Source of the DNA: Adineta vaga
Taxonomy: Eukaryota; Animalia; Rotifera
NCBI GenBank assembly: GCA_021613535.1
Contig: CP075492.1
Location: 12,338,001 to 12,402,000, forward strand
Reading direction: 5' to 3'
DNA length: 64,000 nucleotides
Shown here one piece after another: positions 15,971 through 63,800 of this stretch. Under the pieces are notes generated by a model. That model did no database searches, was not told where the DNA came from, and was given only the letters and a program-made list of their open reading frames with translations. Position 1 is the stretch's first letter, and each line of letters starts with the position of its first letter. A program made the translations under genes and the position numbers.

Positions 15971-17855
15971 TGTTGTAATCTTTCTTCTGTCTATTAGTTA
16001 ACGTGCTTTCTATTTTTCTTCTAATGTTCCATTTCAAAAACAAAATACGCAAAGTAAATAATCGATAATAACTAGAAAAAGAAAAATCGGACATAGACAT
16101 TTCTACTCCTACATAGTATAAGTAAACAATATATATTATATGATCAATTCCTATTAAGATCATAATTGTTTCTCTCTCTATAGAAGAATTGATAACCTAA
16201 GCCAGATTAGTACTTACCACAAAGTGAAAACAACTACGCTAATGATGAAATGCAATCTCACACTTGTTCTCAGGTGTTTGCTGTCGGCTACAAAACTAAG
16301 CAGTCGTTTTGTTTGTCTGTTTTATTTTGTTGAAAAGAAAGAAAACGAGAGAGAGAGAATGAGGGGAAGACAGAAGAAAACAAATCTCGTCTTCTCCTCC
16401 CTTTTTTTTCTCTTCTTAAGTGTAAGGTACTTTTTTTATGCTGTATTGCGTCGTCGAACAAGAATAACAACAAATACCACTTCCACCATCAGTGGTTGGC
16501 GGCTTTTTCTCTTCACTAACTATACCGTTCTTCCTGACAAGAAATAAATAAATAAGCAATAGGTGCAAAAAAATAAGAGTTTTTTTTTTCGTACTTGTGT
16601 GGAAAGAGCATATAAAAAACATCTCATCTTTTTTTTTCTCTTTCTCTTTCTCTTTCTTTTAAGTACAGATAAGACGTACATAATATACGAAAGGTAAAAT
16701 TCGTGTGCATGTTTATAACCTTTACTAAAACTTGAAAATGAAAATTAGCATGACGAATGATTTTTTTACTTGTCGAATTCATTGATTTCTTTTCTTCTTA
16801 GTTACAAATATTGAAAGAAAAACTCTAATAATCATTTTTCTTTTGAAAGCAAATTCATGTACAATAGTCTTGCGTTTTTTTTTTATCAAAAGAATAAATT
16901 TATTTTCAAAGCAAAAAAACAAATATATATCACGATAAAGAAACGAGAAATGAATGTATGACGTCGAAGGTTACTTACCGCAATAGCAAATAGAATTACA
17001 AAATCAAAAGTAAATTCAATAATAATAACCACAAATAGATCTTGGAGTTTACTTTGATCACTGATATTCAAAAAAGGAATTGATTCAAATCAAGAAATTT
17101 ATTAACGAGTTTTTTCTTCGAATCGTTCTCTTATTGATTCTACATGTTCATGTGTGGCTTCTTTGTAAACAAAACAATACAATGTATTTTTCTTTTAACC
17201 TTCACTTTCATCATTCAATCGCTGAAGAACATCGAAAATTTTCTAATGAAAAAAAAAGAATTGAATCTCAACACGTCATAACTCACGCTTAAAATAAGAT
17301 GTTTTCTTTTCTATATGAAAGAAGGAAAAAATCAAATAACAGTTGGCATATACAAAATATAATTGTATGCCATACATATGCAAAACAAGCTTTTGTTCTC
17401 TTGATCAAAGTTCGATTATATTGAACTCGTTTTTTTCGCTCGCTCTCTTGTCAAATTTATTCGATGAGAAGATATACGAATGCAAACGAACGAATAATGT
17501 TCATTGAAACAGATCAAATGTCAACTTCATATTGAAATTTAATGCATAGATACCTTTTCACTAAATAAATACAGTTAATGCTAATATCAAAGTAACAGAA
17601 CAGATGGATCGAATCAATCATACGCAATACAGTGGTCCCATACTGCGATAGTTTATATATTGAAACCTATTTTGATTTTCATTACAATAGTCAAAAAAGA
17701 AGAAGAAGAACGAGCAGAAATAGTTTGTAAAAGTCGATATCAATGGGAGATAATTTTAAAAAAATGCACATACACACAACAGCAAAAACTAGTAAGAACT
17801 GAGATTAAAAATATAAGAAAAAAAAAAAGAAGAGTTGAAATATTCATGTCCTGAA

Positions 17856-20142
17856 TTATAATTTATTGTCATCATTACTACTTTGTTGCAAATTCATTTT
17901 AAGAATGTCATCTTCTGTATTCCCTGTTAAAGATTCTCCTTCACCTGCAACAACCGTCGATTGCTTAGTTCGGAAACTAAATAAACATTGAAATAAATAT
18001 CGAGAAATCTATAGGAAATCATTTGTTTATTTACCCGATTATACCCATACGTTCGACTTCAGCGACCGTTTGTGGAAGTGGTTTGTGTAACGTTTCCGGA
18101 AACATTAAAGCAAGAACGGCAGCCGAAAGTGAAACAATACCGTAAAGAACTATGGGTAAATAAAGCCAAATACGTGTCTGAATAAAGGCGGAAAATAAAT
18201 ATTCATGTTTTTCTACTATTCTCAACTTACTAAATAATCATTGCAAAATGTACCAATAATAGCGCCAATACGGGCAACCATTGAACAAATTCCCATGCCT
18301 GTATTTCGAACATTAGTTGGAAATAATTCATTGGCATAAATATAAATAATCGCATAGGATGCTGATGCAAAAAATTTCAATGCAACATTAATTATATTCA
18401 TGAGAGTTATTTGAGCTAGAATTTGCAAAAGAAAAACATTTCATTCGTCTCCTTCTTTTTCGTAACAAACCTGAACTATCTTTTGTCATGAATTTTTGAA
18501 CGGGTATAGCAAGAAGTGCAACTATACCGAATAGAATTGCAAATAGACAATAGGGTTTCTTTCGGCCAACACGATCGAGTATTAAATGAACGATTACATA
18601 GGCAGTCAATTCAACCAAAGCACTGACAGTAAATGATAGATATGGATTTAATTTCCATGAACCTGTATTTTGTGAAACACCATAAAACACAAGATTTTGT
18701 ACGAGCCTTAACGAAAAAAATCGAGAATTATTAATTTTGTTTTTGTTTTGAATAAAATCAAACTTACCATTGAAAGAAAAGATTAATACTGATAATAAAC
18801 ATAATTTTTGATCTAAATAAAGTCATAATACCTGCTTGATTTTGTTTATTTCCTATATTCTATTTAAAAACAAAATATTTTAAACTAAAAGATATGTTTC
18901 TTTTGTCTCGAGAAACAAACTCGTTCTTGTTCTTCTTTCATTTGTTGATAAGCAACTTCATTGAATGGTCGTTTATTTTCTTTTGCAATATTTCGTAAAA
19001 CTTTTTCAGCATCATCAAAATGTCCTTTACTAACAAGCCATCGTGGACTTTCTGGTAGAATACTAAACGATAATTTTCATTTGTTTTTTTCTGTTTCAGG
19101 TTGACAATCTTTACTTACAAATAGAACAACATGAATGGAATAGTAAAAATCGAAATAGCCCATGTTAATGTTCTCCATGTACGAATAAAAAAAGCAAAAC
19201 CAACAAGAAAGAATTGACCAAACGCAAAAAAATATTCAATCACAATTCCAGTTAATAAGCGTTTACTTGGACCGACTAGAAATTATGAATTTACGAATTG
19301 ATCCATCTATGAGAAGAATTCTTATTCTTACCGATTTCTGAACCGAGTACAAAACCAGATACAGATATACCTCGTGTTGAACATGCTAATAAAAATCGTG
19401 CAAAGATGAAAATTATATACGATGGCCAAAATCTTAATGATTCTTGTGGACCAAATGCACAGAGAAATCCCGAAAAAGTCATTAGAATAAAACTAACACT
19501 CATTATTGGTCGACGCCCGTATCTGTAAAATAAACAAAAAAGCAAATGATTTTATAAGATCTTCATATTTATATATTCTTACTTGTCAGCTAATATGCCA
19601 AAAACGATTGAACCCACCATATAACCAAAGAAGAAAATCATTTGAACTGCTGAACGATAATTAACTCGATCACAGACCATACTCCACTAAAAACAAACCA
19701 ATCAACAGAATACGAGTTATTCCATCTTTATTTAATAGATAATCTTTACTTCTTCGACTAGCGTTTTTGTATAATGAGTTTTATCATAAACATAATTTTC
19801 ACAGCTTTCTAATTGATTCAATGATTGATTTTCATGGCGTAGAAAAGTTCTTCGTCGGTAACAACGTTGACATTCTTTGAGTGATAAACCATTTTGTTCC
19901 TTATTACATTGATATGCCGTTGGTTCATATTCCAAGTGAAATATTTGGTTGGATGAATTTACATAACTATCCTTCGATTTCAAAACAGGATTTCTACATC
20001 GAAAATCTGGTGTTGCTGCAGTAAATGTATATGTATAGACCATAATTGGTGGTAACATATAAGTCAAACATATAAGAGTATATTTCACTTTTTGAAATTT
20101 ACCCCAATCACCAACTGTTTCAAGAAATGTATCGAATTTCAT
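17856..20142 (-). CDS. SLC22-family organic cation transporter (MFS)
   Basis: [17 protein letters not shown], a large Cys-containing first loop, [43 protein letters not shown] and FPET. About 10 short introns; stop at 17856-17858. Confidence 0.93.
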
Positions 20143-20395
20143 CTACAAACAAACGAAAAAGTAATGCAGTTGGAAAATATTGCGATATGGAATGACTAAA
20201 AAGGATAAAATGACTAGTACATATATAAATAGACACTAAAAAAAAGCAATAAAAGAAACAAAGTGAGAAAGAAAGAAAGAGAGAATGAATTGACTGTATG
20301 TGCATGGAAACTTTGATTATGAAGAATGACAAAAGGTAGACACTAAACATATGTCAGGAGATACAACATATAGAATAAATATTGACTAGAAAGTT

Positions 20396-27858
<7,463 letters not shown>

Positions 27859-39900: not shown

Positions 39901-42900
39901 ATGGGAATGAATACGTTTTTAATTGTTTTATTATTATTGTTATTGTTCAATAATCGACAGGTAAGATTTTCAACATATATATGATTATTTGCATTAATTT
40001 TCAAGTGAAATCATAAATCTTTTTTCTTTTGGAGTTCGTTTGATTTCATTTTTCTTCTCCCCCTTTTTTTTCCTTGTCACAAAAGTCAAAGTTGAGCATT
40101 TGGTGTCTCTCGACCTAAAGTACTTATGTGTATGTGCATCGTTAGTTCATCGATGATGGTGAAGTGTATATACCGGTACTTGTCCGGAAAAGATAAGAAA
40201 ATGAAAGCTTATTTGAACAATTGATACGCAATAAAAAAAAATTTCTCTTCAATGCACCACCATCATCATCATTAACTGATTTTCAATCAAGTAGATAAAA
40301 GAATTCCGTAATTTTTTCTTTCTATAAAATTAGATTGATTGTCAAGAATCTTCATCAATTTTACTTGTTGATCTACTTCAATTTCACAATCCAACTGGTA
40401 TTACTATCAATGGACGATGTTGTGATGGTTCATTTCCTTCTGCAAATATCTGTCCGATGTCAATATCCTGTAATCTACATACAATTGTTTGTTTGGATTT
40501 TGTCAATAGGTACAGTCATTGAATGCAAGAAAATCTCAATATACATAATTGATTTTTGTGTTCTGTTATTTGCTTATACACATGTGTATGAACGATAAAA
40601 GGTGATGCCACTTGTCTGGCATAACACTCGATGTCCTGGTATCAGTTTAGATTGATCATGCAATATGAAAGAGAGTATAACCCTCGAGACAAAAAAGAAG
40701 AAGGGAGAGAAATTTGAAAAGCAAATATAAACGTCTACATCGCCAAAAGATATTTTTATTTAAATCTTTAGTGAATTACAATCAAACTGGACTTCATGTC
40801 CGTTGGGAAAAAAATCTTTCGAAATCAAAGCAAATAGTACGAGTTTATTAAATTATTATACACCAAATAATACAACAAATCTTTTCCCATTACAATTTGC
40901 TTTACCACCGATAAATGATGTAGGTTATCAAATATCATTCTTTCTTTCAACTTTTGTCTTTTCATCGGATAGAATTCTATCGGTATCAAAATCTTCGTAT
41001 TTTATAATAATAATATAAGTATGTTACTCAATCAATTTCATACAACATTTCATATTGATATATCTGACGGATTATTTCAACAATCGACCTTAATTGATAT
41101 CTCAAACAATGTCTCAAATATCAATCAGTATGTGTTATATTAATAGATTGCGAATGAAAATAATATGTTTGATTTGTCTCAATTAGAATGATTATTGGAT
41201 TGAAAAGTTATTGTCGAGCGACATTTTATGGAAAACAATGTTCCGTGCAATGTATTCCAAATGATGATTGTACAAGTTCATATACGTGTCATTCAATAAC
41301 AGGTGAAAAAATCTGTTCACTTGGTTGGTACGGAAATGAATGTTCCATACGAAATACATCGATGACATGTTCATCATCATCATCACCAGGTATAAATAAA
41401 TCTTTTGATTTTATCGCATGTCTATGCAATTTTTTCTTAAAGATCTAATCTGTCACAATGGTGGTTTTTGTCGAAGTAATCAATCAACAACTTGCTGTTG
41501 TCCTCATGGTTTGTTATGAATTGAAAAATTTCATGAAAATAATTCTTATTTTTCAAGGTTTTACGGGTACGAACTGTCAGTATCTTTCGACATGTAAATC
41601 AGATGAAACATGTTTAAATGGTGGTTCCTGCCAATCATCGTATGATTTAGCATCTCGAAGTTATTATTTTGTTTGCAATTGTCCGACTGGGTATGAGAAA
41701 AACAAGATTATTCTTCGAAAAAAAAAACGTTTTCATTCTTTTAGTTTTACTGGTTTATATTGTCAAGTTAGACAACGATGTCCACCAACATTCTATGGTC
41801 CAAATTGTACAAATCAATGTTCGGCACCTAATTCATGCTCTGAAGGACATTTTCACTGTAATTCAGCTGGTGAAAAAGTTTGTTCCTATGGTTGGGGTCC
41901 AATCAATTTATGTACACAAAAATTAATTGCTCCGATCTTTGATACGGAATGTTCGAATTCGAATGGATGTTTAAATGGTGGTTCATGTTTTAATGGTACA
42001 TGCTGTTGTCCCGTCGGTTATACAGGTAAGACACATGTTCATTATTGAATATAATTACTAAATGTGACAATATCAAAGGACGTCTATGTGAAACATCTAT
42101 TGACCCATGTATGAGTAATCCTTGTGAAAATAATGCTTTATGTTTGTCGACGTCTACGGGATATAAATGTTTATGTTCAAGTCCTGTTTATACAGGTTCA
42201 TTATGTGAAATTAATCAAAATCCATGTCAATATTCGCCATGTCAAAATGGCATTTGTCAATTATTGACAAATACCAGTTCGTTCAGTTGTATTTGTTATC
42301 CAGGTTATACCGGACAATTTTGTCATATTAAAATTAATTATTGTTTATCACAACCATGTGAAAATCATGGTATTTGTGCGAATATAGCTACAGGTTTTAT
42401 TTGTACTTGCTTATCGGATTTTACCGGACCGACTTGTTCAAGTCGAATAAATTCATGTTCAAATCCATTATCTTGTTCAAATAATAAAACCATCCATTGT
42501 TCAATGGGTTTTACTAATCCTCCGAATTGTCTCGACGATATTAATGAATGTTTATTAGAGAAGGAACCATGTAAAAATGGTGGTTCATGTATTAATACGA
42601 TGGGTAGTTATTATTGTCAATGTAATAAAGATTATCAAGGAAGTGATTGCAGTATTCCAATCGATCCATGTTTAAGTAATCCATGTGTGGCATCAAATTC
42701 AATATCATGTACATCAATTATGATCCCGGATAATTCAATTAGTTTTAATTGTACATGTCGCGTAGGATTTACGGGTAAGATGAATTGTATTTTTGTTTGT
42801 CAGAATAGAAGAATCGTTTTTTCTTTTTCATTTAGGACATCATTGTGAAATTGAATTGAATCCATGTATGAATAGTCCATGTTTACATGGTAAATGTCAA

Positions 42901-45900
42901 GTATTGACACCGTTAACAAGAACTTGTATATGTGAACCAGGTTGGACTGGTATTGAATGTCGAGAGAATATTGATGAATGTGTATCACATCCATGCTTCA
43001 ATGCTGGTCGATGTATTGACGATGTGAATAAATATCATTGTGATTGTTTAACAGGTTTTATTGGTGACCATTGTCAAACTGAAATTGATCTATGTTCAAG
43101 TATGCCATGTCTAAATAATGGTAAGTATTTATTCAAGAAATGAAAATATATCAATATCAATATATTATTACTAAAGGTACATGTATCAATCAAATTGAAT
43201 CATATTCTTGTTTATGTCAATACGGATGGACAGGAAATCTCTGTGAAGTAAATATTAATGAATGTTCATATCCATTATCTTGTCATCCAAATGCGACTTG
43301 TATTGATCAACCTGGTTCATATCAATGTTTATGTCCACCATGGTTAACAGGTGAAAGTTGTTTGATAGCTATCGATCAATGTGAAACATATCCTTGTTTG
43401 AATAATGGTGTTTGTGTAAATAATTACGGTAGTTTACCAACTTGTCATTGTCAAGCTGGTTTTACTGGTATTTATTGTGAAGTAAATATTGATGATTGTC
43501 AAGCAACACCATGTTATAATAATGGCACATGTATTGATCAAATCAATAGTTTTGTATGTTTATGTTCATCAGGTTATACTGATCTACGTTGTCAAACACG
43601 AATCAGTCAATGTAATAGTTTACCTTGTATGAATGGTGGAATATGTCGAGATTCATATGATGATGATAGTTTTCATTGTATTTGTCCACCATTTTATACT
43701 GGTAAACAATGTGAACAAGTAATGAATCCATGTTTAAGTTTTCCTTGTACACATGGAAGTTGTATACCATCCATGTCTTCATATACATGTCAATGTAATA
43801 CGGGATACACAGGTGAAACTTGTGCGATACCCACTGATCAATGTGCATCAAATCCATGTGGATCAAATGGAAATTGTACAAGTTTATCGACAAGATTTAG
43901 TTGTTGTTGTGCACCAGGTTATACAGGATCAGGATGTAATCAATTAATTGATATTTGTTTAACAAATCCATGTTCTATCGAAGGTGTTGAACGTTGTGTA
44001 TCAACAGGAATTTCATCATTTAAATGTTTGTGTAAACCGGGCTATTCTGGACGACATTGTGAAATCAATATCAATGAATGTTTATCTGAACCAGTAAGTT
44101 AATTTTATTGATGATGATGTAGATAGCATTTATTAATCATTAATCATTTTAGTGTTTACATAATGGAATATGTATTGATTTTCAAAATAGTTATCAATGT
44201 ATTTGCCCATTGATATATACAGGAATCAATTGTGAACATCTACAAGATAAATGTATAGGAATTCAATGTTTAAATGGTGGACAATGCGTAAATAATGGCA
44301 CAAATTTAACATGTCTATGTGCACAAGGTTTTCAAGGCGAAAATTGTGAATTACTTGTTGATTATTGTCAATCGCAACCAGTAATAGATTGTTCTTTTTT
44401 TTTTACTCATTCATTGTCATATTTATCCGTGTTTTTCTTTCTACCTAGTGTGTCAATGGTGGCATGTGTTCAAATACGCAATTAGGACCTCAATGTACTT
44501 GTCCGAATGGTCTTACTGGTTCATTTTGTGAAACAATTATTGATCAATGTCAATCGAAACCATGTAAAAATAATGGTACTTGTCGATCATTAATTGATAA
44601 ATATGTATGCCTCTGTTCAAATGGCTTTACTGGTAAGGAAAAGAAAATGAGAATTTAATTATGAACGATGTATATATTTATATTATGATTTGATTGTTTA
44701 AGGTGTTCAATGCGAGAATGAAAGAGATGAATGTGAACCAATCAATCCATGTTTAAATTCTGGAAGATGTATTGATGGATTCAATAATTTTTCCTGTATA
44801 TGTAATTTAGGTTTTACTGGTTATTATTGTGAAAGTCAAATTGATCAATGTCAAACAAATCCATGTTTAAATGGTGGAATTTGTCGAACTTTAATTAATA
44901 ATTTCAAATGTGATTGTCCACAAGGTTATACGGTAAGCGTTTTTGAAAATAATATCGAACATAACTATTGATATTTATCATAAAGGGATCGACTTGTTCA
45001 TCTATGATTAATTACTGTTCAAGTAATCCATGTATGAATAATGGTTTATGTATACCATTAATTGATGCATATCGTTGTGTTTGTTTGGATGATTTTACTG
45101 GTGAAAATTGCGAGAAAACTTCGAATGAATGTTTATCAAATCCATGTTTAAATAACGGTACATGTATAGATGCTGTATGGAATTATACATGTCAATGTGA
45201 AGCTGGTTTTACTGGATCAAATTGTCAATTACAAAAGAATTATTGTGATACTTCACCATGTCTTAAAGGTTTATGTGTCAATAAGGTAGAGAAGAAAATA
45301 ATTGTAAGAAAATTTGAAATTGTTTTTTTATTTTTGTCTTTCAATTTAGTTAAATGGATATGATTGTATCTGTCCTTCATCTTCATATACAGGTGTTCAT
45401 TGTGAAATACAGATCAATAAATGTTCATCGAATCCTTGTCTATCTGGTGGAACGTGTATTGATGGTTTAGAAAATTTCATGTGTATTTGTCCAGCCTGGT
45501 ATGCTGGTCTGACATGTTCAGAACGTATTGATCCATGTTTAAATCATTCAAATTGTGCTAATCATGGCACTTGTATTACAAATCTTAATGTCAAACCATT
45601 TGGATACACATGTCAGTGTTCACCGGGTTTTGCTGGACAAATGTGTGAAGTAAATGTTGATGATTGTGCCTCACAACCATGTAAACATGGAAGATGTTTG
45701 GATAATATCAATGGATTTTTTTGTCAATGTTATGATGGATATGATGGTGTTTTATGTGATGTAAGTTTGCAGACAAAATAATATTTTCTTCAGTAATAAA
45801 TATTCTATTCGTAGCATGAAATTAATCAATGTGAAAACTCACCATGTCAAAACAATGGTACCTGTCAACCATTGATCGGTTCTTATCAATGTCTTTGCCC

Positions 45901-48900
45901 ATCAGATTATCAGGGCAAAAATTGTGAAGCAATCATAACAAAGCCATGTACAACAAATCCATGTTTGTTAGTAGACATTGCTTTTGATTGAAAAATTTCC
46001 TAAACAAAACATTTGATTTTTTTCGTTTGTTTTTAGTAATAATGGTACATGTACAATAACAGCGGATGATAGTATGCAATGTACATGTTTAGTTGGATAT
46101 ACAGGACAAAAATGTGAATTACAAATCAATGCTTGTAATCGTAATCCGTGTTCTCATGGAATGTGTCATCAAATGTCGAATGGATTTTATTATTGTACAT
46201 GTTTACCAGGTTATACAGGATTTGATTGTCAAATAGAAATTAATCCATGCGATAGTTTGCCATGTTTAAATAATGGAATTTGTAGTAAATCAACGATGAA
46301 TACATTCAATTGTACATGTTCAAATGGATATTCAGGTAATCAATGTCAATATGGTGGTTATCAATGTCAGTCAGCTCCTTGTTTAAATAATGGAACATGT
46401 ATGATTAATGGTAATAATTATCAATGTTTATGTCCACCAGGTTTGACAGGTAATCGTTGTGAAAATGATATTAATGAATGTGAATCAATGCCATGTCAAA
46501 ATAATGGTATATGTTTGCAAACAAAATTAAATGAATATCAATGTCTCTGTGCTACAGGTAGAAACAAAAGATAAAGAATAAATTGATGAGATCTATTTCT
46601 TTTCTTTACTTTTCCTCTCAAAGGTTATACTGGTTTTCATTGTGAAGCAATTATTGATCCATGTTTATCGATATATTGTTTAAATAATGGAACATGCATT
46701 CGAACAAGTTCAACAACAGGTATTTGTTCATGTCAACCAGGTTATACAGGTTCATCATGTCAAAATCAACTGAATACATGTTTAAGTGCACCATGTTTAA
46801 ATGGTACTTGTATACCACTAATTAATTCATATCAATGTAATTGTTTTCCTGGTTATACGGGACAACGATGTGATTCAATCGTCGATTATTGTTCATCCAA
46901 ACCATGTTTTAATAATGGTACATGTATTAATCAAGCTACTTCATTTGCTTGTCAATGTCCATATGGTTTTCAAGGTCGAACATGTGTTATACGGTTCAAT
47001 CTTGTCAATCATCACCATGTTTAAATGGTGGAACATGTAATGATGTTGCACCTGGTTTACATAATTGTTCATGTCCAATATCTTATCATGGAGAATTTTG
47101 TCAATTACGAGATTCATTTTGTTTAGAAATGCCTTGTCAAAATCATGGAGTTTGTCTAGATACATTAAATGGTTATCAATGTATATGTCAACCTGGTTAT
47201 GATGGTATCAATTGTACAAATGAAATTCAACCATGTATATCAAATCCTTGTTTAAATAATGGTTTCTGTCGGAATACAAATAATGGACTTAGTTATCAAT
47301 GTTTATGTGAAAAAGGTTATGCTGGACTTCGTTGTGAAGTTGAAATGAATTGGTGTTCATCAAATCCATGTCAAAATCAAGGCACTTGTATATCTCAATT
47401 AACATCCTTCAAATGTCTATGTTCATCAACATATACAGGAGTTATTTGTCAAATACCCATCAGTAATTGTTCACAGACAACATGTAAATATGGTTTACCA
47501 TTAGTGACTAGTTCCACAAGTTGTTCATGTGTATGTTCAAATGGTTATACGGGTAATCGATGTGATATACCGATTAATCCATGTTTAAATGAATCTTATT
47601 GTATACGTGGCAAATGTCATTATCTTAGTCCTGGTGTCGCAAATTGTACATGTCCATATGGTTACAGTGGACTTCGTTGTGATACACGATTATCGAATGG
47701 TGCATGTTCATCATGTCCTTGTTTATATGGACGATGTCGAACAATTGATACTAACGAAGATTATATATGTGATTGTTATCAAGGTTATACAGGAAAACAA
47801 TGTGATATATCTATTGATTTATGTACACCATCTCCATGTTTATATGGTCAATGTGTATTAGATGCTATGCATGGTTATCAATGTCAATGTTCACCAGGTG
47901 CACAGGGACGAAATTGTTCTAATTTAATTAATACATGTGGATCTAATCCTTGTTCGAATAATGGAGTTTGTGTTCAAGGTTTAAATACCTATCAATGTGT
48001 TTGTCAATCAGGTTATGCTGGTATTCATTGTGAAGTATTAATTAATCAATGTACATCATTAATATGTTTAAATAATGGTACATGTGTAAATCTACCAACA
48101 AATCCACCTACAGCTATATGTCAATGTCCATCATTGTTTACTGGTGTTCAATGTCAATATCCATATGCACCTTGTGCATCTCAACCATGTCAAAATCTAG
48201 GAACATGTATTACAAATGAATTATCATCGTCATATACTTGTCTTTGTCCAAATGGATTTACAGGATCTAATTGTGAATTTAGTATTCAGGTTTGTCATAG
48301 TCAACCATGTCAAAATGGTGGTATTTGCTCTGAACCAGCACCTTACTATTATATGTGTCAATGTCTATGGCCTTATTATGGAAGTAATTGTGAATTAATG
48401 TCAGATCCTTGTTTAAGTTATCCATGTCGAGGACCATTATCTCAATGTATATCGACACCAATGCATCAAAATTATACATGTATTTGTGCTGATGGTTTTC
48501 AAGGTTCGACTTGTTCTATACCTTTTGATCCATGCCATATTCGTCCTTGCCGAAATGGTGGTACATGTATGCAAGCAAGTTCATTGAGATATTCTTGTTC
48601 ATGTCCAATCGGTTTTCAAGGACAAAATTGTGAAATTGAAATAAATCCATGTTTGACTTATCCATGTCGAAATGGTAAAGCAATTAGAACTTCAGCGATT
48701 ACTTGTGAATGTCAATGTTCAGAATCATATTATGGGAAATTTTGTGAAATCAATCTTTGTGAAAAGAATCCTTGTGCAAATGGAAATTGTATTTCGAATG
48801 GAAATTATACATATACTTGTAGTTGTCCAAATGGATTTCAATTTCTCATGGGAGTGTATGTATTTTTTTCTGAACGAAAATATGTGATTTATTCGTTGTT

Positions 48901-51900
48901 TGTTTTTAGTTGTGCGGATATCAATGAATGTCGAACAAAACCAGGAATTTGTGGCAATGGTGGACGATGTTTGAATACCTATGGATCCTATTCGTGTTTT
49001 TGTAAAGCAGGTTTTCATGGTAAGAATTGTGAATATTTCAATCCATGTCGATCAGTTCCTTGTATAAATGGTGGAACTTGTATGATAAATGAAAGTTATC
49101 CATATTGGCAATGTCATTGTCCAACATTGTATACTGGTTCGTATATCGAATAACAAACAAACTCTATTTTCATTACAATTCTTTTAGGTTCACATTGTGA
49201 AACACCATTACGTCGTTGTTCATCAAATCCATGTAGAACAGGAGTTTGTATTGATCTTCCCAACGATCAATATCAATGTCAATGTTCAGCTGGAATTACA
49301 GGTGTACATTGCGATACACCATTATTACCATGTGATTCGAATCCATGTTTAAATAATTCAACATGTTTAACATTATCATTAACAAATTATACATGTGTAT
49401 GTCCACCAGGATATATGGGTGCAAAATGTTCCGAACGTCGAACATTATGTTCGAAAAATTCTTGCCAAGCAAATGCAAAATGTATTGTTGATCAAAGAAA
49501 AGGTGAAGAAATTTGTCAATGTCCAGTTGGACGCTATGGAATTCAGTAAGCTTGAAAAGAAAAAAAATGTATCACTTAATAGAAATGATTATTTCCTAGT
49601 TGTGAATTTATTTCGGCATGTGGAATGAATCCATGTGTACAAGGGACATGTCAAAATAAAAATCAAACAACTTTTCAATGTATATGTAATCCTGGATATA
49701 CTGGTAACTAAAACATTTCTTCGTATTGATCAAGTGATGTTTTTTTTTCATTGTTTAGGTAGGATATGTGATACTTCATTAGATGTTTGTGAAACAAATC
49801 CTTGTAAGTCATTTTTTTGTTAATTAATTCTCAAAATCATTGATACAATCGAATAGGTTTGAACGGTGGAGTATGTTCAAATCTTGGTCAAGGTTCCTCA
49901 GTTTGTTCTTGTCCAGTAGGATTCTCTGGTAATTTTCTATTCATTTTCAAATGGTTGCGACTATCATCGATCCCTTTTTTTTTCTTCTTTTTAGGCTCCG
50001 ATTGTAGTGTTCCACATTGTCTTAAAAACAGTTGTTTCAATAATGGTATTTGTTCTATTCAAAATAATTCTCTTCAATGTCAATGTCCATGTGGATTCAC
50101 TGGTAACATCAAATTTTGTCTCGAGAAGAAAACTAAAACTTATAAATAAAACACTTTCTATTCATTAAAGGATCTCGTTGTGAAACACCATATGATGTTT
50201 GTTCGTTAACTGTCTGTCAAAATAATGGTACTCGTTTTCTGAATATAACTCAATGTCAATGTTCATGTTTATGTCCTTCGACATTTACTGGTCATCTTTG
50301 TCAACAACCAGTTATAACAAATGATCGAACATATTCAGGACAAATTGCTATTCCAATCAATCGTTCTCGAGGTAAAGAAGAATGCATTTGTATTTCATCA
50401 TTAAAATCATCCTTAAATCTTTAGGATCACTCTGGGAAAGTGTTTTACAATGTATAGATCAAGTATGGAATAATCTCAATGTTTTGCTTGGTAAATAATT
50501 TCCTTTTGAACGTTAATCATTTTTTTACTAAGAAAATACTATTCTAGTTTGTCCATCATCATTTTCTCTTGTTACTCCAACAACATTCTATCCATATTGT
50601 TATCGAATTAATCAACAAAATTTTCTTAAAAATCAAAAACAAGCATTTCAAGAATGTGAACAACAAAAAACACAACTTGTTTGGTTTCAATCTATTGATG
50701 AATTAGAACAACAATTGTTACCAGCTCTATCATCACATGGATTAACACGAGGTTAGTTTGAAAATACTTTATCAATATACTTGCTCAATTATTATGGAAA
50801 ATGAAAAACTATATAACTATTATTTTTCAATTTAGATTTTTGGACAAGTGGAATCTATGATTCGAAATCTCAACGATGGCAATGGTTATTATCAAACAAT
50901 AATACACGAATGGATCTTGATCCATCTATAGTTTCACATTTTGGAATCAATTCTGATCATGAATCACTCTATGTTTCATTCAATCAATCCACAAATCAAC
51001 GTTTAACAACAAGTCCATCCTTCGAAACATATTCAACAATATGTAAAATATCAGCAACAAATCTTCTATTCAATAATCAAACACGTTCTATTGAACTTAT
51101 TTCTCATCAAACGACACTTAATAATCAGTAAGTCAAAAAGAAAATATATATTTACAAGCATAATTCTTATCGCTATGACAATTATTTCTCTTAGATCGGA
51201 AGTAATTGTCTATAATTTTAATTACACAATTCTTCCAACTATTCATTTCAATACACCTATTCAACAACCAACAGATGCTCATTACGCTGCTATGTGTGGT
51301 GCTATTGGCAATCCATCGCCTTCCGTTGAACCATATACAATTGATATTTGTGGATATTTTTCAACAATTACAGATCGAAATGTACAATTATTAATGGAAA
51401 CAATTGGAACATACTATTCAACTCGACGAGTATCTATTACATCAATACGTAAGTTTTTCCTATACCAATCAACATCCGTATTGATATTTTTTCTCATCAC
51501 TAATAGAACCATATGCCGCTGTTCCATTAACTGTTGAACATTACACAACTATTGCTGGTAATATGATGACACGAATTAAATTTATAATAACTAGTGGATC
51601 ATCATTAATTCTTGGTTCAAATATTGAACCATTAGCATCAATGAATGATATGTTAAATACCATTCCATATCGATCTTATCAGCAATGTATTCCATATATA
51701 CCTTTAAATATTCTTCTACAATTAAAATTATGTATTCCAATTCATGAAATTTCTTCATGGATCAATTCGATTACAAAAGCTGTTTCAGTGGCAACTGGAC
51801 AATTGAATGTTAATATTATGTTGAAAGGTGTTCAAGAAGGTGTTACAACTACTGGGTAAATTACTTTCTTTTTTTTCGAAATGAAAATTAATAAAAAAAT

Positions 51901-54900
51901 TTGATCTTTTATGTTTTCTTTTAGTCAACCAGCAAATATTGCCTATTTCTTAGTAACAATCAATGGAATAACATCGAATCAAACATGGAATACTAATTTA
52001 TCAATGAATTCAATTCTTCTCTCAACTATTCAACAAGAAAATGACAAATTATTATGTTCAAAAGATACATATATACTTTCATTAGAGCATAGTATTCGAA
52101 ATTTTTATGTTCCATGTTCCATTCCACAAATGTAAGTAATTCTTAGGAAAAACTATCGATTATTGATCAATTTATTGTAGTCTTGAAAAACAATTGAATA
52201 ATGCATTACAACAAGCAGGCATTTATACAATAAATCTAGTTATACATGGTAATGATGAAGCTGTTGATGATCTTGGGTAAGTTAATCTTTTCAAGATATA
52301 TCTCATTTGATTTTATCTGTATATTAGACAAATATATCATTTACCAAATATATTCCTTCAACATATCAATGGTACATGGTTAGATAGTTCATTTGAATTA
52401 AACAATCAACTTTATGAAATATTAATTGCAAATCAATTACAACGATTAACAACTAATGTTTATCGATTATCGAAAGCATATTCTTATTTTTATGCTAATC
52501 CTCTTTCAGAAAATGATCGTGATTATCTTCAAAATCTAATTCTTACTCTATACAATCAACGAAGTAAAAACAATTCATTTTTTTTTCTTCTTCAATTAAC
52601 TTTCATCTTTTTCTAGATACGATTGCTGGTAATCATATTGAAATTATCTATGAAGATTTATATCGAAATTTAACATCAATGCAATCTATTCGTCGAGTTT
52701 ATCTATTCATTTTCCATGATGATGAAGTACTGGATGGAAGATATTTATCATCGATAGTTTTATCAAAGACACAAATTAGTCATATTCAAAATCCATTGAA
52801 TTACATATCGAATCAAATTCCAATCAATCTAATTAAACAACGTGATATTCAACATATAACATTTTCAGGCAAAATTCATCAACCTATTGCAGAAAGAATC
52901 TTACAAGATTATTGGCAAAATCCAATGAAACAAGGATTAAGCAATGCAAAAGTTATAATCCTACGATTACAAGAATATCTTGCCTATTCATCAAAGTAAT
53001 TTCGAAGTTTTTTCACTAAAAATTTTCATGTCTTTCAATGTTTTGTTTTTAGACAATTCTATACTACAATAACATATATTGTTACAACTACAGATGATAA
53101 GTCAATTCCAAATACATGTTTTGATTCAAATTTAATCGAAACAATGGATAATTTATGTAATACACAGAATACGTACTTAGCAAAAGTACCCGATGGATAT
53201 ATTCCATCATTTATTGATTTGAAAGGCATTCATTCACAAGTTCAACTTGAACAAGATAAATTTGATATATTAATTAGTTTAGCATTACAAAGAATGGATA
53301 TTACTGGCAAAGGTAAATCGATATAGAAAAGAACTAATCAAATCATATCTCTTTTATTTAGCTTCATCGATATTAACGGAAACACGATTCGGATTGGATA
53401 TGTCAACAATTACACGAGTTTATTATATGGTTCTACCTGATCAAATGATTCTACAAGAACAAATACAAGAACAACTTAGAGTAAAATCTTATTCAAAATG
53501 TTCTATTTCTTCTTTTACATTCTATCTTTTCTTATTTAGTTTGTTTTCTCAGCAATACAAACACTTACATATCAATTGTATCCATCTGATCAAGTAACTC
53601 TTGCACATGATGATACTCATGAATATATTGCTAATATTTCATTACCAATTACGGATTCTATTCGAAATGAAATCGAAAAACAATTAACATCATGCAATCC
53701 ACGTATGTATTCTCATTCATTAAATTCTAATTGATGTATTCATTATTACTTTTTTAGAATATGGTAAAGCAAGAATTGTTTATTTTGAATCAATCAATTC
53801 CTATCAAACACATTTTTATTTAACAGTAAGTCGAAAAACTGAATCAAACCTATTTCATTTATATTTATATTTTTTAGTTCATTAATGAAACACAATTGTT
53901 GACACGATGTGATTTTTCATTGTATTATCCAGATATGGATACTTATCAAGCCGAATATTTGGGTATCAACAGTCATTATCTCGATCGATCGACTTTTCTT
54001 ATTCAATCTGCATCACTTATTGAGAATATTAAACAACTACGGACGAATGATACTTCTCATGTCTCGATAGAATTACAAAAACAAACTCAATATATTTGTT
54101 CAGATGGGTATGTTTAATGCTAACGAATGAAATCTGTAAGTTTAAATGACATTTATACTTTAGAAAACGATCTGTACGAATTGATTATCATGTACAAAAT
54201 CATTCATTGCCAATAAATGTAATAACTGGAAAATATCCTAATAACTGTACTGCCTACCCCATTCATTCTCTCTATCTTATTGAACCACGTCCATCACATC
54301 GACAAATTTATGATGCCTTAACAGCTGCTTGGCGACAATCGAATAGTAATCATTACTTCTATATCTTAAAAATCTTCTCATTTCTTTTTCTAGATAATTA
54401 TCCAATCAATATTTCCTCGGATTTCTTCATAGATTCATCTTATTTAACAAATAAAAAGTAATGTTTTTCTTCTCTATCTTTTCTCGTTTCATCCTGTTTT
54501 TTTTTCTAAATTTCTAGTCAAACATTAACACGTTTAATCTATACAATTAATTCCAATTCAATTCGATTTCTATCACCATTGATAACTTCAATTAATTTAC
54601 CGAATATTTATACGAACATTCCATACAAACGATATGCAATTTTTCTTGAAAATAAAGCTTCTAATTCAACTATGTTATCAATCATTAATACAGCATTGAG
54701 ACGTAGTTGGTCAATGGCAAATAGTTATCTTTTTTCAGCAAGCGATCTATCCGTACCATCAATGAATACGATTCTATCGAAGTATGTATTTTGTTTCTTT
54801 AAAGAAATATTCTAAATTGTTGTTGACCTTTAGAAATGAACAAATGAGACTTGATTATTTAATTGGTTTATATTCGAATGATATCGGTGATTATTCTCCA

Positions 54901-55573
54901 CCATCGGAACAAATCTATTCACAAATATTTAATGCAACTGGTTTAGAAACATTCATTCAACTTCGTTATATACCACGAAGTAGTGGCGATACTATACTTA
55001 ATGATGATCAAATTTCATTCTTTCCATTCGGTACACGATCTGATGGACATATCTATGGAGTAAATAGTATCAATAGGAAATAATTCTCATCTTATTTCGT
55101 TTTCTTTTTCTTTTTTCTAGCTTGATTGGTGGGTTATTTTAGTTATTATTATTGCTATCTTAGCTACATGGTTAGTTTTATGTTTAATTTGTTATATTTG
55201 CTTTCGTAAACGGTAAGATTAAGAAAATATCTCAGTTCTCATATATGAACTTTTGTTCAACTCTAGATCTACAAAACAATATCATCATAAAATTTCAAAG
55301 CAATCATCAAGACGAGTCGATGTTCTTGCTCGTGAACAAGATCATTATCTACGTCCATCATTGTCTTCCTTAGCCTTCGATGGACCATATGCTGAATCAG
55401 TCGATTCATCTGTTGATGATCATCAACGTATTTCTGTTCGAACAATGTCTTCCCATCCTGAATTACAAGTTCGTCGTTTATCTGAACAAGATTGGCCACA
55501 TTTTGCTATGAATAATCCTTATGGTTTATCATCACTTCTTTCGGACACAACAAATTCCAGTCGTCCTTTATAA
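39901..55573 (+). CDS. Giant Notch-ligand-like type I membrane protein: SP - MNNL/C2 - DSL - 2 EGF - DSL - ~60 EGF - C-type lectin - repeated stalk - TM - cytoplasmic tail
   Basis: Signal exon 39901-39960; MNNL-like LLQFHNPTGITINGRCCDG...CNLHTIVCL; DSL motifs at ~41212-41343 and ~41779-41913; ~65 EGF repeats by manual count (~41440-50305); CTL-like CP...YCY...AFQECE...LV...FWTSG...WQW at ~50548-51050; TM WWVILVIIIAILATWLVLCLICYICF-RKR at ~55121-55212; stop at 55571-55573. One -1 frameshift at ~46987. Confidence 0.88.
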
Positions 55574-57842: not shown

Positions 57843-60800
57843 GTGATATATATGCCTTTATTTAATAGATTCCTTAAGTTGGTTTCTAGCTTATTGAATA
57901 CGGAAAGAAGAGTATCGGAATCTGCAGCTCGATTAGTACAAGTATTCGATGACAGCAATGGGGATCAAGCATTCTTTGATCTTATTTATGCAAGTTTTGA
58001 GAGCTATGACGAGTCGAATCGATGTCAAAAGAACGAACATTTTACGGCAGATATTGATCTTATTATACAATGCACAATAGAAAGTCTGAATGATCCGGAA
58101 CTTTCGATTGTATTTCCACGACGAATTGATGCATACTTTTATATATATCGTCGAATAAAAGAATATATTCAACTCAATAAGAAGCCTGAATATCAAATGG
58201 AAAGCTTGCATAACAGCTTTCGAGAGAAACTCTGTGATACGTTTCAATCAACACAAGGTCTACATCCAATTCTATGCGTAATAGATAGGGATGTAATTAG
58301 AAAAATAGATGTTCAAGAACATTTGTCTCTAATCAAAGAGATTAATGATACTCAGACATTAATTATATTCTTATGTCTTTGTAAATTATCTTTCCAATCG
58401 CTTTATCAGTGGTCAATGGATATCATGATCCTCTATTGTGGAGAGATGTTTTATCGCAAATCCACCGTTGGCATATCCTCTTGAAGGATTTCCTTCAAGT
58501 TTATCTTCAATACAAACAAGCATTCGAATTGTATCCACTCGATGAATCAGGTTTCGTATATCTTGTTCAGGCGATGCATCCTCCGAAGAGCTGTCTAGTA
58601 TCGTCATTTGGATTTATCGTCGATGCGCTCGACAAACTAAATTTGAATCACAGGACATTCTTTCTTCAATATCGACCTTTATTTCAAGATGGACTAAGAA
58701 ATAATTTATATGAATATTCACACGTTGTCTCACTGCTCTCAATGTTAAGTTGTCGGGATGACTTACATGAACAATATTTATCAATTTTTATGTCAAATTT
58801 GTCCCAAAGCGATCTATGGAAGAGATTTTTACTCATAAGCGAAAAGGGTGATATAAATGAAGTAGCACAAAAACATTTGACTACCATTTTAACACAGCGA
58901 ATGCAAAATGTACCAGTCGAAGAATTTATACGATACTCTAAATCTGTTAAAATTGATTTAAACTCTATTAAAGAAGGAAATCGACCATATTTCTTAAAAG
59001 TGTCTGAAGCGGTAACTTATGCTTTTCTGAATAAACAACTTAACGATGATTCATATCGATATAAACTCTCGGAAGGAAATTTAAAAGAGTTGGTTAATAT
59101 TACTCACGACCTCGCATCAATACATGGTCTTCTCAATCGATCGTATATACTTGTAATTCAATATTTACTATTTCGATCAGACGAGCATGTAAAACTAAAA
59201 CCAAAAAAGATCAAACGTATTTTTGATAAGCTAAATGATCTAAGTCAAGGATTGCACGCCACAGATGATTTGGTTAATATTATTCAAGATGACTGTTTAA
59301 GTGATCATCTTATTAATATTCCTCAAGAATGGATGAGAGTGTCACCATATGATTATGAGAGTCTCTGTACGAGTCATCGCAATAATAGTTTGTCAATTCA
59401 TATTTGGTCAAGAATTGTATGGCTGAGTCTTTCTAAAATAGACGCTGTGAAATGGAATGAAATTCTCATAGAATTAAACAAATGGTTAATTAGTGTTAAA
59501 CATCAAGTTTTTGATGAGACCGACATCCTGACAATTATATTCATCAAGAATGTATTCGAGTTCATGATTACTAGACAAACGAAATCTATATTATCTTTTT
59601 CGAATATTGAATCAATACTTCAGTATATTCTAAAGATTAAAGAGAAAGCACCAAGTCAAATAGACGCAAAATTAATTGATGATTTTGTTGAACGTGCAAA
59701 ACAATCAGTTGCTGACGTTCTATTATTGAATGGTAAGTGTAATTCTCAATATTCCGTTGTATCTGAGAGTATTCTAAATAAATAAGATAATAGTTTCAAT
59801 ACGCTACATTTCCTTAGTCAGAATGACCGAAACAGAACGCATATATAGCATATTCGCTATAACGTATTATATGTGAATCATAAACTTTCAGAATAGTCAG
59901 TTAAATAGATTCCCTGGCATAACGATATAATGTATGTTCTTGAAAGCTAAATAATATTTTCAATACATAGTACGTATCTTATTATATATGATGATAAACC
60001 GCCTTTTTTTGTTATTAGGAACACGTACGATATATTTGGAATTGTCGGATAAGTCAATCGCTTATCAATTTCTTCCTCAAATTGATTTGAATAACATTCT
60101 CACTTCACAAGATCCTCAAAAATATAAATTTCCTATTACAAGTAACCCAATCAATTGTATCATGTCAGTTTCAAAACCAGATGATATCGACATCATCCAA
60201 ACTGACACAAGAGATCAATACTTTCTTCGTTTTATCGAACAAGTAACTGCATGGATACGATGGTTTGATCAATTTATCGATATTTTTCAATATGTGATCG
60301 AACGCTTCATAGCATGGAAAATGGAAGGCGCTGAGCAATTATTTAAAGATATACATACGATTAAACACGATCCAGAAACTACCCTGACTAAGATGAAAAC
60401 TATAATTCAACAGCTACTAAAAATATTCAATGCATTCGATAATTTACATCGTTTATGCGATTTATTTGATTTTCTAAAACCATTTCAAATTATTTGTAAC
60501 GGTGCATTGAGTCATCGAGGTCAATTTAAATCTCATATGGAAGATATTCAAAAATCCTTTCCTAATAATACGTTTACAGTGAATGGAAGAACTCAGGAAC
60601 AAAAATGTTTACCTATTTATGAGCATCGACATGTTCATTGGTCAGTTGCTTGTACAGAGCATCATTGTAATATAAAAGTAGAATATCGATTACAAAATAT
60701 TTCGAATCAAATTCACGAGTTGTACAACGAAAAAGATGTTATGATTGACAAAAATTATCTTTATGGTGAATTCAAAACACAACATTCTGGTCAATTAGTG

Positions 60801-63800
60801 ATAACGATTAATAATCAGAATCCTCACACCCAGCGAACATTATGGTACTCAGTGGTACAGGATAGTATACCAACATGTCATCTCTTTCAAGGTATTCTAG
60901 ATGTCTATTATCAAAAATATTTCAAGCAATCAACTCAATTAGTTAAAGAAAAAGATTTAAGTCAACTGATTACTCGTGTATTCTCATTTATTGATAATCT
61001 ATTAAATGGGAATACTACTTTACAAGAAATGGATTGTTTGAGAACAGTTTTCCATGAAAAAATGTCAATGTACGCAATGAAGTAGAGAAATTATTTACAA
61101 ATCGTTCAATGATAAAACCAATGAAAGAATCAGTTACAACAGACATATCAAATAATATAGATAATCATGAAATTGAACAAGTGTGTGAATGGTTACGAAC
61201 TTATCAATATTATAGTCATCTAAGTGATATAATTACTTGCATGCGTATGTACAAAATTGTTTCTAATACTGAAGAAAATGATCAATCGATTTATAATTTA
61301 TTACAAATGAATATCAAAGAAGATTGCACTTTGAAAGAAATTCCCGAAATCTACAAAGAACTTCATGAACGTTTTCGAAAATTAACGAATCATCATTTAC
61401 AATTAATTAAAATCGTTGTTGAACGTTCAAATGTTGTTGAATTAATGAAGAATGCAAATTTATATTCAACAAATGGATTACGACGATTTCAAGAATTACG
61501 AGATAATTTAACAACACAATTTCAATTACAAGAACGAAATAGTACCATTCTTAATTCTTGGATTATTACATATGCTTTATGCGAACCATTCGTACGTCAA
61601 GTCGATACTTTAGATGAATTTGTCGATAATATTGCTCGATTATCAAATATCGATGAAACATCTTTGGAACATATTAAAAGTAAGTTAACCATTTCTATCG
61701 CGATTGTAAATGTTAATATTTTATACTACAGTTATACGTTTGAGCAGAAGATATGAAAGCTTATGTTAAGTCTTCATAATAAGTAGACGTTTAATTTCAT
61801 TCTAGTTGTTAGCGATAATATACAAATTGTAACTATGTGGTTATCAGCAGAAAATATAACAATGTTAGATAATGCTCTTATTACCATGGAACATATATAT
61901 AAAACTGGTGTAGTACATATATCTCTTCGACGTTTATTGAACGAACAATCCGATCTAAGAATTCAATATTCAATAGAAAAAATATCCACAGAAATCGATG
62001 ATGTGGTCAACGACGACGACGACGACGACGATGATGATGATGATGATATGGTACAACAGGAACAACAGGAGATTCATAAAGTAATATTATCGATAGACGA
62101 TATCGATGATCATAAACGTCAATTGACATTCTGTAATGTTGATCTACAAGAAAATATGATTTTTCAAAAGATCTTATTAAATGAACAATTGCAATTATTT
62201 CAAATAATCGAAAAGATCTATTCAACTTTAATTGAACTTGAAATGAATGGTCATCCAGAGTTTCAATTAAAAGACAATTGTTATGAAATTTATGATCCAT
62301 ATGGTAAGATTTTTCATGTTAGTTTATGAACCAATGTGTATCTGTTTAGGTAAAGTGAAGCGAATCTTATTATGTGCAAAAAATCTTCGTATGAATAATC
62401 GACAACAACAACAAGATTTTGAAACTTTGATTAAAGATCGAACACATGATTTCGAATTAATCTCTCGCGATTTAAATACTAAACATGAAATGTGGATAAA
62501 AGATTTAGAAAGATATCGATATGAAAATCGATTATTGAAATTATTTTCTAATCGTCAAATCATGATTATGATTATTTTATTAACAACATCGACATTACAA
62601 GATTCTATACAACGAAAGTTTCTTAACAAATTATTCTTATTTAAATCGAACACTATCGACGAAATTCAACGACAATCTAACGTAACTATTTGTTGTTTAA
62701 TTCATTATTTACGATCGATTCGAATCAATGATTGTGATTTATCGATAGATAATATTACAATTTTATATCAAAAATATAAAATTGAACAAGGTACATCAGC
62801 CGATGTAAGTCTTAAGCATTTATGTGGATTTTTAAAAGAATTATTTAATAATGGAAAAGAATTGTTAATAAAAAATACAATAAATAATGAAAATCAACAG
62901 TTTTCAATCACGTTAAGTTCATCAGAATCAAGTTCGGATAAAAGAAAACTTGAAAATGATTTCAATATGGAAATCTATTGTATTCTTTTGGATATATTTA
63001 ATGATCGATTACCATCTGCCTATCAAATTCTTTGGTGTTCAATATCGACTGAAAATGATATTCGATTATTTTTTTCACGTATACGAACATTTCCTTCTCT
63101 TACATTCGCTATCATTGATATCGACAAAATGCATCATCGATTACGTGAATTATTATTAGATGAACAAAATTCTTTGACGAAAGAAACAAAATCTCATGGT
63201 TCTGTTTATTATTTCTCTAGAGAATTATTAACATCTAGAAAAGGTTTACAACCATTCATTATCCTACCGAAACACCGAAATTCAACGCATATGCATACAC
63301 AATTAATAACATCATTACGACGAAATAATATAGTATTACCACAAATTCAAATCATTGCTGGAGCAGCTGGAATTGGTAAGTTTTCTTTTTTGATAGGTGT
63401 GGGTTTGTCTTCATTACAGACCCACATCTTTCTTTCATTGTTCATATATTTCAGTTTCTCTATTTAGGAAAAACACATAAAATAAAAACGCAATACAAAA
63501 ATGAGAATATTCTATGTATTAGTATTAACGATAAAATCGATGTATCCTCTTTAATTCGATCATTGCTATTGTTTGAATCACAAACATCACATACTCAATT
63601 ATTCATCTATCTAAATATTTCGATTCATGCACCATTTGAACAATTGAATCGTATTCTTTTCTCTTTATTACTATGTAATTCATTACATGACGTTAGTACT
63701 GGTCTAACATTTTCTTTCTCAATGAATAAACAATGGAAATTTATTATTGAAGTACCATATACCGATAAATGCAATGTAAATATCAAAGAAAATTTTAATC

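Follow-up and report, generated by a model that had tools for sequence, protein, structure and literature searches.

A giant protein of the DSL ligand superfamily with two DSL domains in the rotifer Adineta vaga

DSL (Delta/Serrate/LAG-2) ligands have one of the most constrained architectures in animal signalling, with one C2 domain, one DSL domain and 1-16 epidermal growth factor (EGF) repeats. The locus analysed here, at positions 39901-55573 of a 64,000-nucleotide stretch of the Adineta vaga genome (assembly GCA_021613535.1, contig CP075492.1, positions 12,338,001 to 12,402,000 of the forward strand; hereafter the window), raises the question of whether a ligand-type head can form part of a far larger protein encoded by a single gene, and what such a protein would do. 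A preliminary description of the locus, made from the sequence letters, had proposed just such a giant, with two DSL domains, some 65 EGF repeats, a C-type lectin and a long stalk. We are nearly certain of its identity and architecture: 39901-55573 is one transcribed gene, a two-DSL giant of the DSL ligand superfamily, and its predicted product is, with the same near certainty, a type I membrane protein of about 4,150 residues. The domain order is signal peptide, MNNL/C2-like domain, DSL domain, two EGF repeats, a second DSL domain, about 63 further EGF repeats, a C-type-lectin-like domain, a stalk of about 1,000 residues, a transmembrane (TM) helix and a tail of 104 residues.

In the AT-rich window (GC about 30-31%) the + strand between 39.9 and 55.6 kb is a dense run of Cys-rich open segments, from which the gene was modelled by dynamic-programming splicing trained on long open segments of that strand. 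The curated gene has 47 exons, 46 GT..AG introns and 4,149 codons, including one X at a frame break; its introns are 42-373 nt long (median about 55), and the splice path runs unbroken from the ATG at 39901 to the stop codon at 55571-55573. The proposed continuous spliced frame from signal peptide to TM helix and tail, interrupted by one indel, was confirmed by this path, the indel being a 1-base deletion after 46993. Exon 1 (39901..39960, +), read directly from the sequence, carries the start codon and a hydrophobic signal peptide in 20 codons, is followed by a GTAAGA donor and has an equivalent exon in a second genomic copy described below. Two elements of the automatic model were not kept: an unsupported 18-nt exon at 40146-40163 was removed, exon 1 then joining 40334 in phase, and a 119-nt intron at 46975-47093 with poor sites (GTCGAA..GGAG) was replaced by the 1-base frameshift. 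The joined translations, with X at the break, served for motif counts and for comparison of the copies, and database searches were run exon by exon.

The frame break itself (46992..46994, +) falls in a linker between EGF repeats, GRTCVIR on one side and VQSCQSSPC on the other, where the reference is without one T after 46993 relative to the second genomic copy; in the alignment that copy reads GFQGTTCTVRVQACQSSPC in a single frame across the break point. In an independent DNA run from 2013 (X1) contigs insert a T behind 46993 at full depth (about 115), two orthologues from environmental contigs (L010/L011 and L013, see below) read through the position, and roughly 2,300 codons stay open downstream. 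For these reasons we do not regard the break as the sign of a dead gene; judging from the sequences compared, it is an assembly error or a lesion of one haplotype, two explanations that the contigs cannot separate. Five further indels between X1 and the reference (49559, 49971, 50134, 51868 and 51908) all lie inside predicted introns, and the 40 substitutions listed between the two comprise 19 synonymous, 13 non-synonymous and 8 intronic changes, none of which creates a stop.

Splicing was assessed by comparing read contigs with the stretch 46600-52590, which covers both the frame break and the junction of EGF rod, lectin-like domain and stalk; these contigs are short, of low depth and do not represent one molecule. 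In an RNA-like run from 2018 (X3) five GT..AG joints were found (50371/50425, 50751/50836, 51127/51195, 51855/51925 and 52131/52181), all of which coincide exactly with predicted introns. They connect the last EGF exon to a linker exon, and the two lectin-like exons to each other and to the stalk, and one further X3 contig spans the exon 49188-49545 end to end. Two X3 contigs join the gene at ~50215, in the last EGF exon, from unmatched sequence that opens with a run of A (AAAAAAAAAAAACAATCGAAACACTCAAAA), an entry that may reflect a chimeric contig, a contig of the other copy or an internal start. The runs labelled as RNA (X6-X14) contained next to none of the gene, X11 yielding nothing when compared with the 46600-52590 stretch, and expression is therefore probably low.

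A search of the whole genome (100.8 Mb in six contigs, the window lying on contig C3) revealed a second, full and collinear copy on the minus strand of contig C6, at about 2,689,700-2,705,000, modelled with 49 exons and 4,093 codons and with no break or stop. The two copies share 60% protein identity and many equal exon lengths; dS between them is about 0.74 and dN/dS about 0.4 overall, ranging by region from 0.24 to 0.52, with the lowest value, 0.24, at residues 3021-3400 in the first part of the stalk. The AV20 assembly of A. vaga consists of six chromosomes, 1-3 homoeologous to the three others, with a heterozygosity of 1.7% (PMC8494291), and the pairing of the gene copies on C3 and C6 agrees with this homoeology (PMC8494291). 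On this comparison of sequences we take the gene to be a pair of old duplicates, one on C3 and one on C6.

Collinear orthologues of the C3-type copy were also found on environmental contigs, namely L013, which is full-length (residues 24-4148, 56% identity, 47.6% GC), L010/L011 (residues 21-3616, 67% identity), L005 (residues 1394-4148, 52% identity) and L006 (residues 2703-4148, 36% identity). The C6 copy and all of these orthologues share the reading frame and the exon lengths of the window gene, and the boundary between EGF rod and lectin-like domain carries neither a stop nor a start signal. Since the MNNL domain and both DSL domains are Pfam-positive in L010/L011 and in L013, the plan has survived both a deep divergence and a strong change of base composition, and in other rotifers, probably bdelloids, it is retained in full under purifying selection. 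With the paralogue and four orthologue loci conserving frame and exons, and with spliced contigs crossing the EGF/lectin/stalk junction, the view that this is a single gene held up. Around the L013 gene (47.6% GC as against 31% in the window) BTB and SPRY open reading frames (ORFs) lie upstream and an arrestin-N ORF downstream, and L010/L011 carry, at combined coordinates 14484-16031, 19709-20750 and 22392-25523, three insertions of 1-3 kb where the introns of the window measure about 55-70 nt; these insertions may be intronic mobile elements.

The head of the protein begins with the MNNL/C2-like domain (40334..41202, +), which occupies three exons (40334-40509, 40772-40919 and 40973-41127) and the start of the next. 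Pfam recognises the first of these, MNNL (PF07657) scoring 23.6 bits on 40334-40519 against a cut-off of 22.5, and 28.8 and 25.3 bits in L010 and L013, respectively. Alignment by hhalign with the canonical MNNL of the same genome gave a probability of 63%, and the later exons show a C2 pattern by eye, without a statistical match. From these sequence features we consider the MNNL/C2 domain to be present but degenerate.

It is followed by DSL domain 1 (41212..41370, +), with 43.4 bits to Pfam DSL (PF01414; cut-off 24.2), by two ordinary EGF repeats (41389..41763, +) recognised from their Cys pattern and the exon model, and by DSL domain 2 (41779..41952, +), with 31.2 bits against the same cut-off. 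The MNNL/C2-like start and the two DSL domains claimed in the preliminary description thus all scored above their cut-offs when the Pfam check was run. Amongst solved structures the closest to DSL1 was the DLL1 DSL domain (E 4.6e-6) and the closest to DSL2 that of Serrate (E 7.4e-5), the top matches of both being the DSL domains of DLL1, fly Delta, Serrate and Jagged-1/2. Both domains are Pfam-positive also in the C6 copy, L010/L011 and L013, and both are eight-Cys variants: eight Cys were counted in every one of the eight family DSLs examined, a pair from each of four loci, against six in those of the three ordinary ligands of the genome. The extra Cys lie in the loop that matches the canonical RPRDD-FGH and after the Cys C6, as in DSL1, which has one in each position. 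The DSL1 loop reads CIPNDDCTSSYTC in both genomic copies, CIPNEDCTSSYTC in L010/L011 and CIPNHDCTSSYTC in L013, and across loci the DSL loops CIPN-DCTSSYTC and [AT][PT]NSC..GH[FY] are nearly invariant.

The three ordinary ligands, each with MNNL and DSL, lie at C1:7989141-7989836, C1:2604729-2605486 and C4:11844774-11845545 (L007, L008 and L009). Their six-Cys DSLs are also without the RPRDD-FGH motif of fly and vertebrate ligands, and from these sequences the receptor-binding face seems to have been rewired in the lineage as a whole. Notch is represented in the genome by one locus, identified by three LNR repeats (PF00066) at C2:6926290-6926672. This is the only LNR locus in the genome and the stalk and tail pieces of the giant that were scanned gave no Pfam match, in keeping with the earlier statement that LNR and ankyrin domains are absent from it. 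The Notch LNR locus is single, in a genome where many genes are present as homoeologous pairs; Notch may have lost its duplicate, whereas the giant ligand-like gene is still there twice.

Beyond the head runs an array of about 63 Notch/Delta-type EGF repeats (41956..50301, +), detected with Pfam EGF, hEGF and EGF_CA. Counted by their CxC...C motifs the EGF modules of the protein total 65, of which 57 are strict six-Cys repeats and eight have an extra Cys, and they carry 31 consensus sites for O-glucose and 27 for O-fucose, so that the roughly 65 glycosylatable EGFs first reported stand; consensus sites for calcium binding number only 6. Compared with solved structures, the array matched the EGFs of DLL1 (E 4e-47) and of Notch1 (E 7e-40). 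Three EGFs of the window (47936-48280, 115 residues) are not found in the C6 copy, and the EGF number of the rod therefore differs between the two copies. No furin-type R-x-K/R-R site occurs in the whole 4,149-residue model, which is unusual for an extracellular protein of such length.

A short linker exon (50425..50490, +), reached from the last EGF by the X3 joint 50371/50425 and 77% identical to its counterpart in the C6 copy, leads to the C-type-lectin-like domain (50550..51044, +). This is split by an intron, 50752-50835, which the X3 joint 50751/50836 removes and which lies at the same position in all loci. A profile of the first half, built from five sequences, matched only C-type lectin domains among solved structures, with the mannose receptor best (E 1.4e-6 for the whole chain) and Endo180, DEC-205, snake-venom lectins and DC-SIGN also found; for the best single stretch E was about 0.14-0.2. 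Pfam Lectin_C remained below threshold (E 0.075-0.1), as did UL45 and A33R in orthologues. The second half, where the sugar-binding loop would be expected, matched no lectin or other solved structure, and by eye, no explicit motif search being run, none of the motifs EPN, QPD and WND was seen in the aligned second halves. Of the C-type lectin originally described, then, the first half has likely counterparts among solved structures and the second has none: a lectin-like fold is a reasonable reading, and sugar binding is putative at most. The suggested role in glycan sensing is correspondingly weak, with only the first half of the fold recognisable and no sugar-binding motif seen.

The predicted stalk (51045..55059, +) is a Cys-poor region of about 1,000 residues in 16 exons that belongs to no known family, the X3 joints 51127/51195, 51855/51925 and 52131/52181 falling within it. 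Its length agreed with the preliminary description, and the stalk pieces scanned gave no Pfam match, SEA included. With 4.2% Pro and an abundance of Ile, Leu, Ser, Thr and Asn, it does not have the composition of a mucin. Self-comparison by blastp found no repeats, and comparison of exon groups by hhalign gave one weak pair, exons 44-45 against exon 46, with a probability of 51%. AlphaFold2 models of the exons 51509-51853 (14 sequences) and 54519-54779 (eight sequences) were of low confidence, with pLDDT values of 56.8 and 62.1, respectively; against solved structures, Foldseek found nothing for them at E <= 0.001 and the best VIA-align Z was 5.0, results that speak neither for nor against a SEA-like fold. 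A feature search of the ESM Atlas (P0002) proposed bacterial Rep proteins with a score of 0.86, which we judged to be noise. When a stalk-exon profile was run against 1.84 billion representatives it retrieved ten short ORFs, all from close relatives, and within its own genome stalk and tail occur in the C3 and C6 copies only. The stalk probably consists of globular modules specific to this family.

A single TM helix (55127..55204, +) is predicted at residues 4020-4045, the top Kyte-Doolittle peak of the model, and is followed by a basic stop-transfer RKR and by a cytoplasmic tail of 104 residues plus stop (55205..55573, +). The tail contains two conserved blocks, at 55319-55399 (DVLAREQD..YLRPSLSSLAFDGPYAES) and at 55457-55504 (PELQVRRLSEQDWPHF), and is the best-conserved part among orthologues, with 70-71% identity in L005 and L006 against overall values of 52% and 36%, respectively. 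Its 28 database matches are all 65-88% identical, one of them, at 82%, labelled Adineta steineri. The motif PEL.VRRLS..W (PELQVRRLS..W in the window) is invariant in 21 of 21 aligned tails, the C6 copy included; from its sequence we infer only that RRLS would be compatible with a basophilic-kinase site. The tail has no Pfam match.

How, then, does this protein relate to known systems? With Delta and Serrate/Jagged it shares the signal peptide, MNNL/C2 start, DSL domain, Notch-type EGFs, single TM helix and short tail. It differs from them in having two DSLs, two EGFs apart and each with eight Cys, in its added lectin-like domain and stalk of about 1,000 residues, and in a tail unlike anything in Pfam. 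It has about 65 EGFs where Delta has 5-9 and Jagged 16 (PMC3415683), and it has no DOS-type EGF1-2 and, unlike Jagged, no Cys-rich juxtamembrane domain, Cys being near zero beyond the EGF array. With Notch it shares the long array of O-glycosylatable Notch-type EGFs, but LNR, NOD and ankyrin parts are absent, a ligand-type head stands in their stead and there is no furin-type site. The preliminary description had also held that no protein of such architecture was known. In the literature we found none combining MNNL, two DSLs, about 65 EGFs, a lectin-like domain and a comparable stalk and tail (annotated eukaryotic proteomes were not searched by architecture), nor did we find publications dealing with the Notch ligands of rotifers or with DSL and lectin domains in one architecture. 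Several DSLs in one protein do have precedents, and this part of the claim fell. A receptor tyrosine kinase of Capsaspora has two DSLs and tandem EGFs (PMC4810162), and Nematostella has genes with 1-11 DSLs, one with MNNL and three DSLs, for which the authors raised possible misassembly (PMC2770060). By their descriptions both are set apart from the window protein, the former being a kinase without MNNL and the latter having no long EGF rod, and neither has a lectin domain, stalk or tail like those found here. The window protein is accordingly a new architecture inside a known family, in which several DSLs per protein were already known. Beyond the preliminary description, the analysis added a second copy of the gene, eight Cys as a signature of its DSLs, and a strongly conserved tail.

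A further comparison is with Uninflatable (Uif) of Drosophila, a very large type I protein (an intracellular antigen lies at residues 3440-3548) that antagonises Notch in cis via the extracellular domain of Notch (PMC3340373). Both are large type I membrane proteins with many EGFs and a C-type-lectin-like domain. Uif, however, has 18 EGFs but neither MNNL nor DSL, and its CUB, CCP, FA58C and HYR domains are absent from the window protein. Homology would thus be limited to the EGFs, and the likeness is one of functional analogy only.

As to function, we propose that the C2-DSL-EGF-EGF-DSL head may recognise the EGF region of the Notch receptor encoded by this genome, whether that receptor sits on an adjacent cell or shares the membrane of the giant. 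The glycosylated rod of EGFs and the stalk would keep the head far from the protein's own membrane, and the conserved tail would couple to a partner in the cytoplasm that serves endocytosis or signalling. A protein that binds Notch in this way would act as a non-canonical Notch ligand or (cis-)modulator, a reading to which we give a probability of roughly 45%. The long-range or bivalent Notch ligand suggested in the preliminary description is likewise conjecture. The Notch reading is favoured because the head carries the module that defines Notch ligands and does so under constraint, and the one Notch locus of the genome offers a possible partner; to our knowledge, the characterised animal proteins with MNNL and DSL are Notch ligands.

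Several observations weigh against Notch binding. No activating ligand that we know of has a geometry like this one, with the head at the end of about 65 EGFs. The MNNL match is marginal and restricted to profile positions 4-48 of 157, the C6 copy gives no Pfam MNNL match, and profiles of the MNNL exons find no C2 domain among solved structures, the later exons also being without a Pfam match. EGF1-2 are without the GW-x-G DOS-type pattern, and the extra, disulphide-capable Cys pair lies in the loop that contacts Notch in canonical ligands. With a dN/dS of about 0.4 overall, the gene is under less constraint than one would expect of a core developmental ligand, and the RNA-labelled runs contain almost none of the gene. 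Finally, the receptor-binding DSL face of human Jagged1 comprises F199, R201, R203, D205 and F207 (PMC3415683), of which only D205 has an equivalent in DSL1 and not one is retained in DSL2. Most of these residues are missing from the genome's three canonical ligands as well, and for this reason their loss in the giant weighs little.

Much of the same evidence would fit an adhesion or apical-matrix protein without a Notch role, in which the head is a co-opted Cys-rich binding module, the rod with the lectin-like domain and the stalk a long tether at the cell surface, like those of Crumbs, Dumpy and Uninflatable, and the tail a cortex anchor. The huge EGF rod, the lectin-like domain and the family-specific modules all suit this role, as do the degenerate MNNL and, in both DSLs, the loss of canonical receptor-face residues and the gain of an extra disulphide-capable pair. 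Three ordinary MNNL and DSL ligands are already present for the one Notch of the genome, the tail is more conserved than the head in orthologues, and Uif provides the precedent of a large membrane protein with EGF and CLECT domains and adhesion roles (PMC3340373). Uif too, however, affects Notch, in cis (PMC3340373), so that for a large EGF protein independence of Notch may be difficult to establish; moreover, an MNNL adjoining a DSL is otherwise a ligand signature, and the DSL loops are nearly invariant over deep divergence. We consider a purely adhesive or matrix role the main rival, possible but less likely than a role on Notch.

Binding of the DSL head to the Notch-like EGF array of another copy of the protein, or of its own chain, would offer self-recognition, with homophilic adhesion or auto-inhibition and signalling through the tail. 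The rod EGFs do match Notch1 EGF structures, including the ligand-binding EGF11-13 (E 1e-25 to 7e-40), and bear 27-31 O-fucose and O-glucose consensus sites as in Notch; head and rod occur together in every locus seen, and the tail is strongly conserved. Yet calcium-binding EGFs number only 6, whereas ligand binding by Notch requires a pair of them, LNR, NOD and ankyrin parts are absent, the tail matches nothing in Pfam and no furin-type site is present in the model, all of which make self-recognition unlikely. We hold equally slim the chances of a bidirectional, self-recognising receptor-ligand whose heads would reach the rods of other copies, or those of Notch, over distances far beyond those of ordinary juxtacrine contact while the tail signals, amounting to a new DSL-EGF mode without Notch cleavage. 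Lastly, that the model merges two neighbouring genes, one for a secreted DSL-EGF protein and the other for a membrane protein with the lectin-like domain and stalk, or that the frameshift at 46993 marks a pseudogene, is very improbable, for although the reference has a frame-breaking 1-base deletion, the RNA evidence consists of short low-depth contigs over 46600-52590 only and the RNA-labelled runs are nearly devoid of the gene, the missing T is present in X1, roughly 2,300 codons are open beyond the break, spliced joints bridge the last EGF, linker, lectin-like and stalk exons, the C6 copy, L005, L006, L010/L011 and L013 preserve the frame and the lengths of the exons, and substitutions are skewed to synonymous ones.

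Elsewhere in the window, a leucine-rich-repeat ORF (7778-8698, +) and an ORF with SacI homology of the synaptojanin type (25090-25761, -) were identified, and the region 57843-63467 (+) contains several large ORFs without a Pfam match.

This lineage, then, keeps a ligand-type head on a rod longer than that of Notch itself, in two copies and in genomes ranging from 31% to 48% GC. If the head binds Notch, the protein would be a test of how far from the membrane a ligand can act and of bivalent binding by two DSLs. If it does not, it would be a clean natural case of reuse of the MNNL-DSL module, bearing on the origin of that module before canonical Delta. In either case rotifer biology gains a surface protein that is conserved and lineage-restricted and that brings with it about 1,000 residues and a tail motif, PELQVRRLS..W, both of them unexplained.

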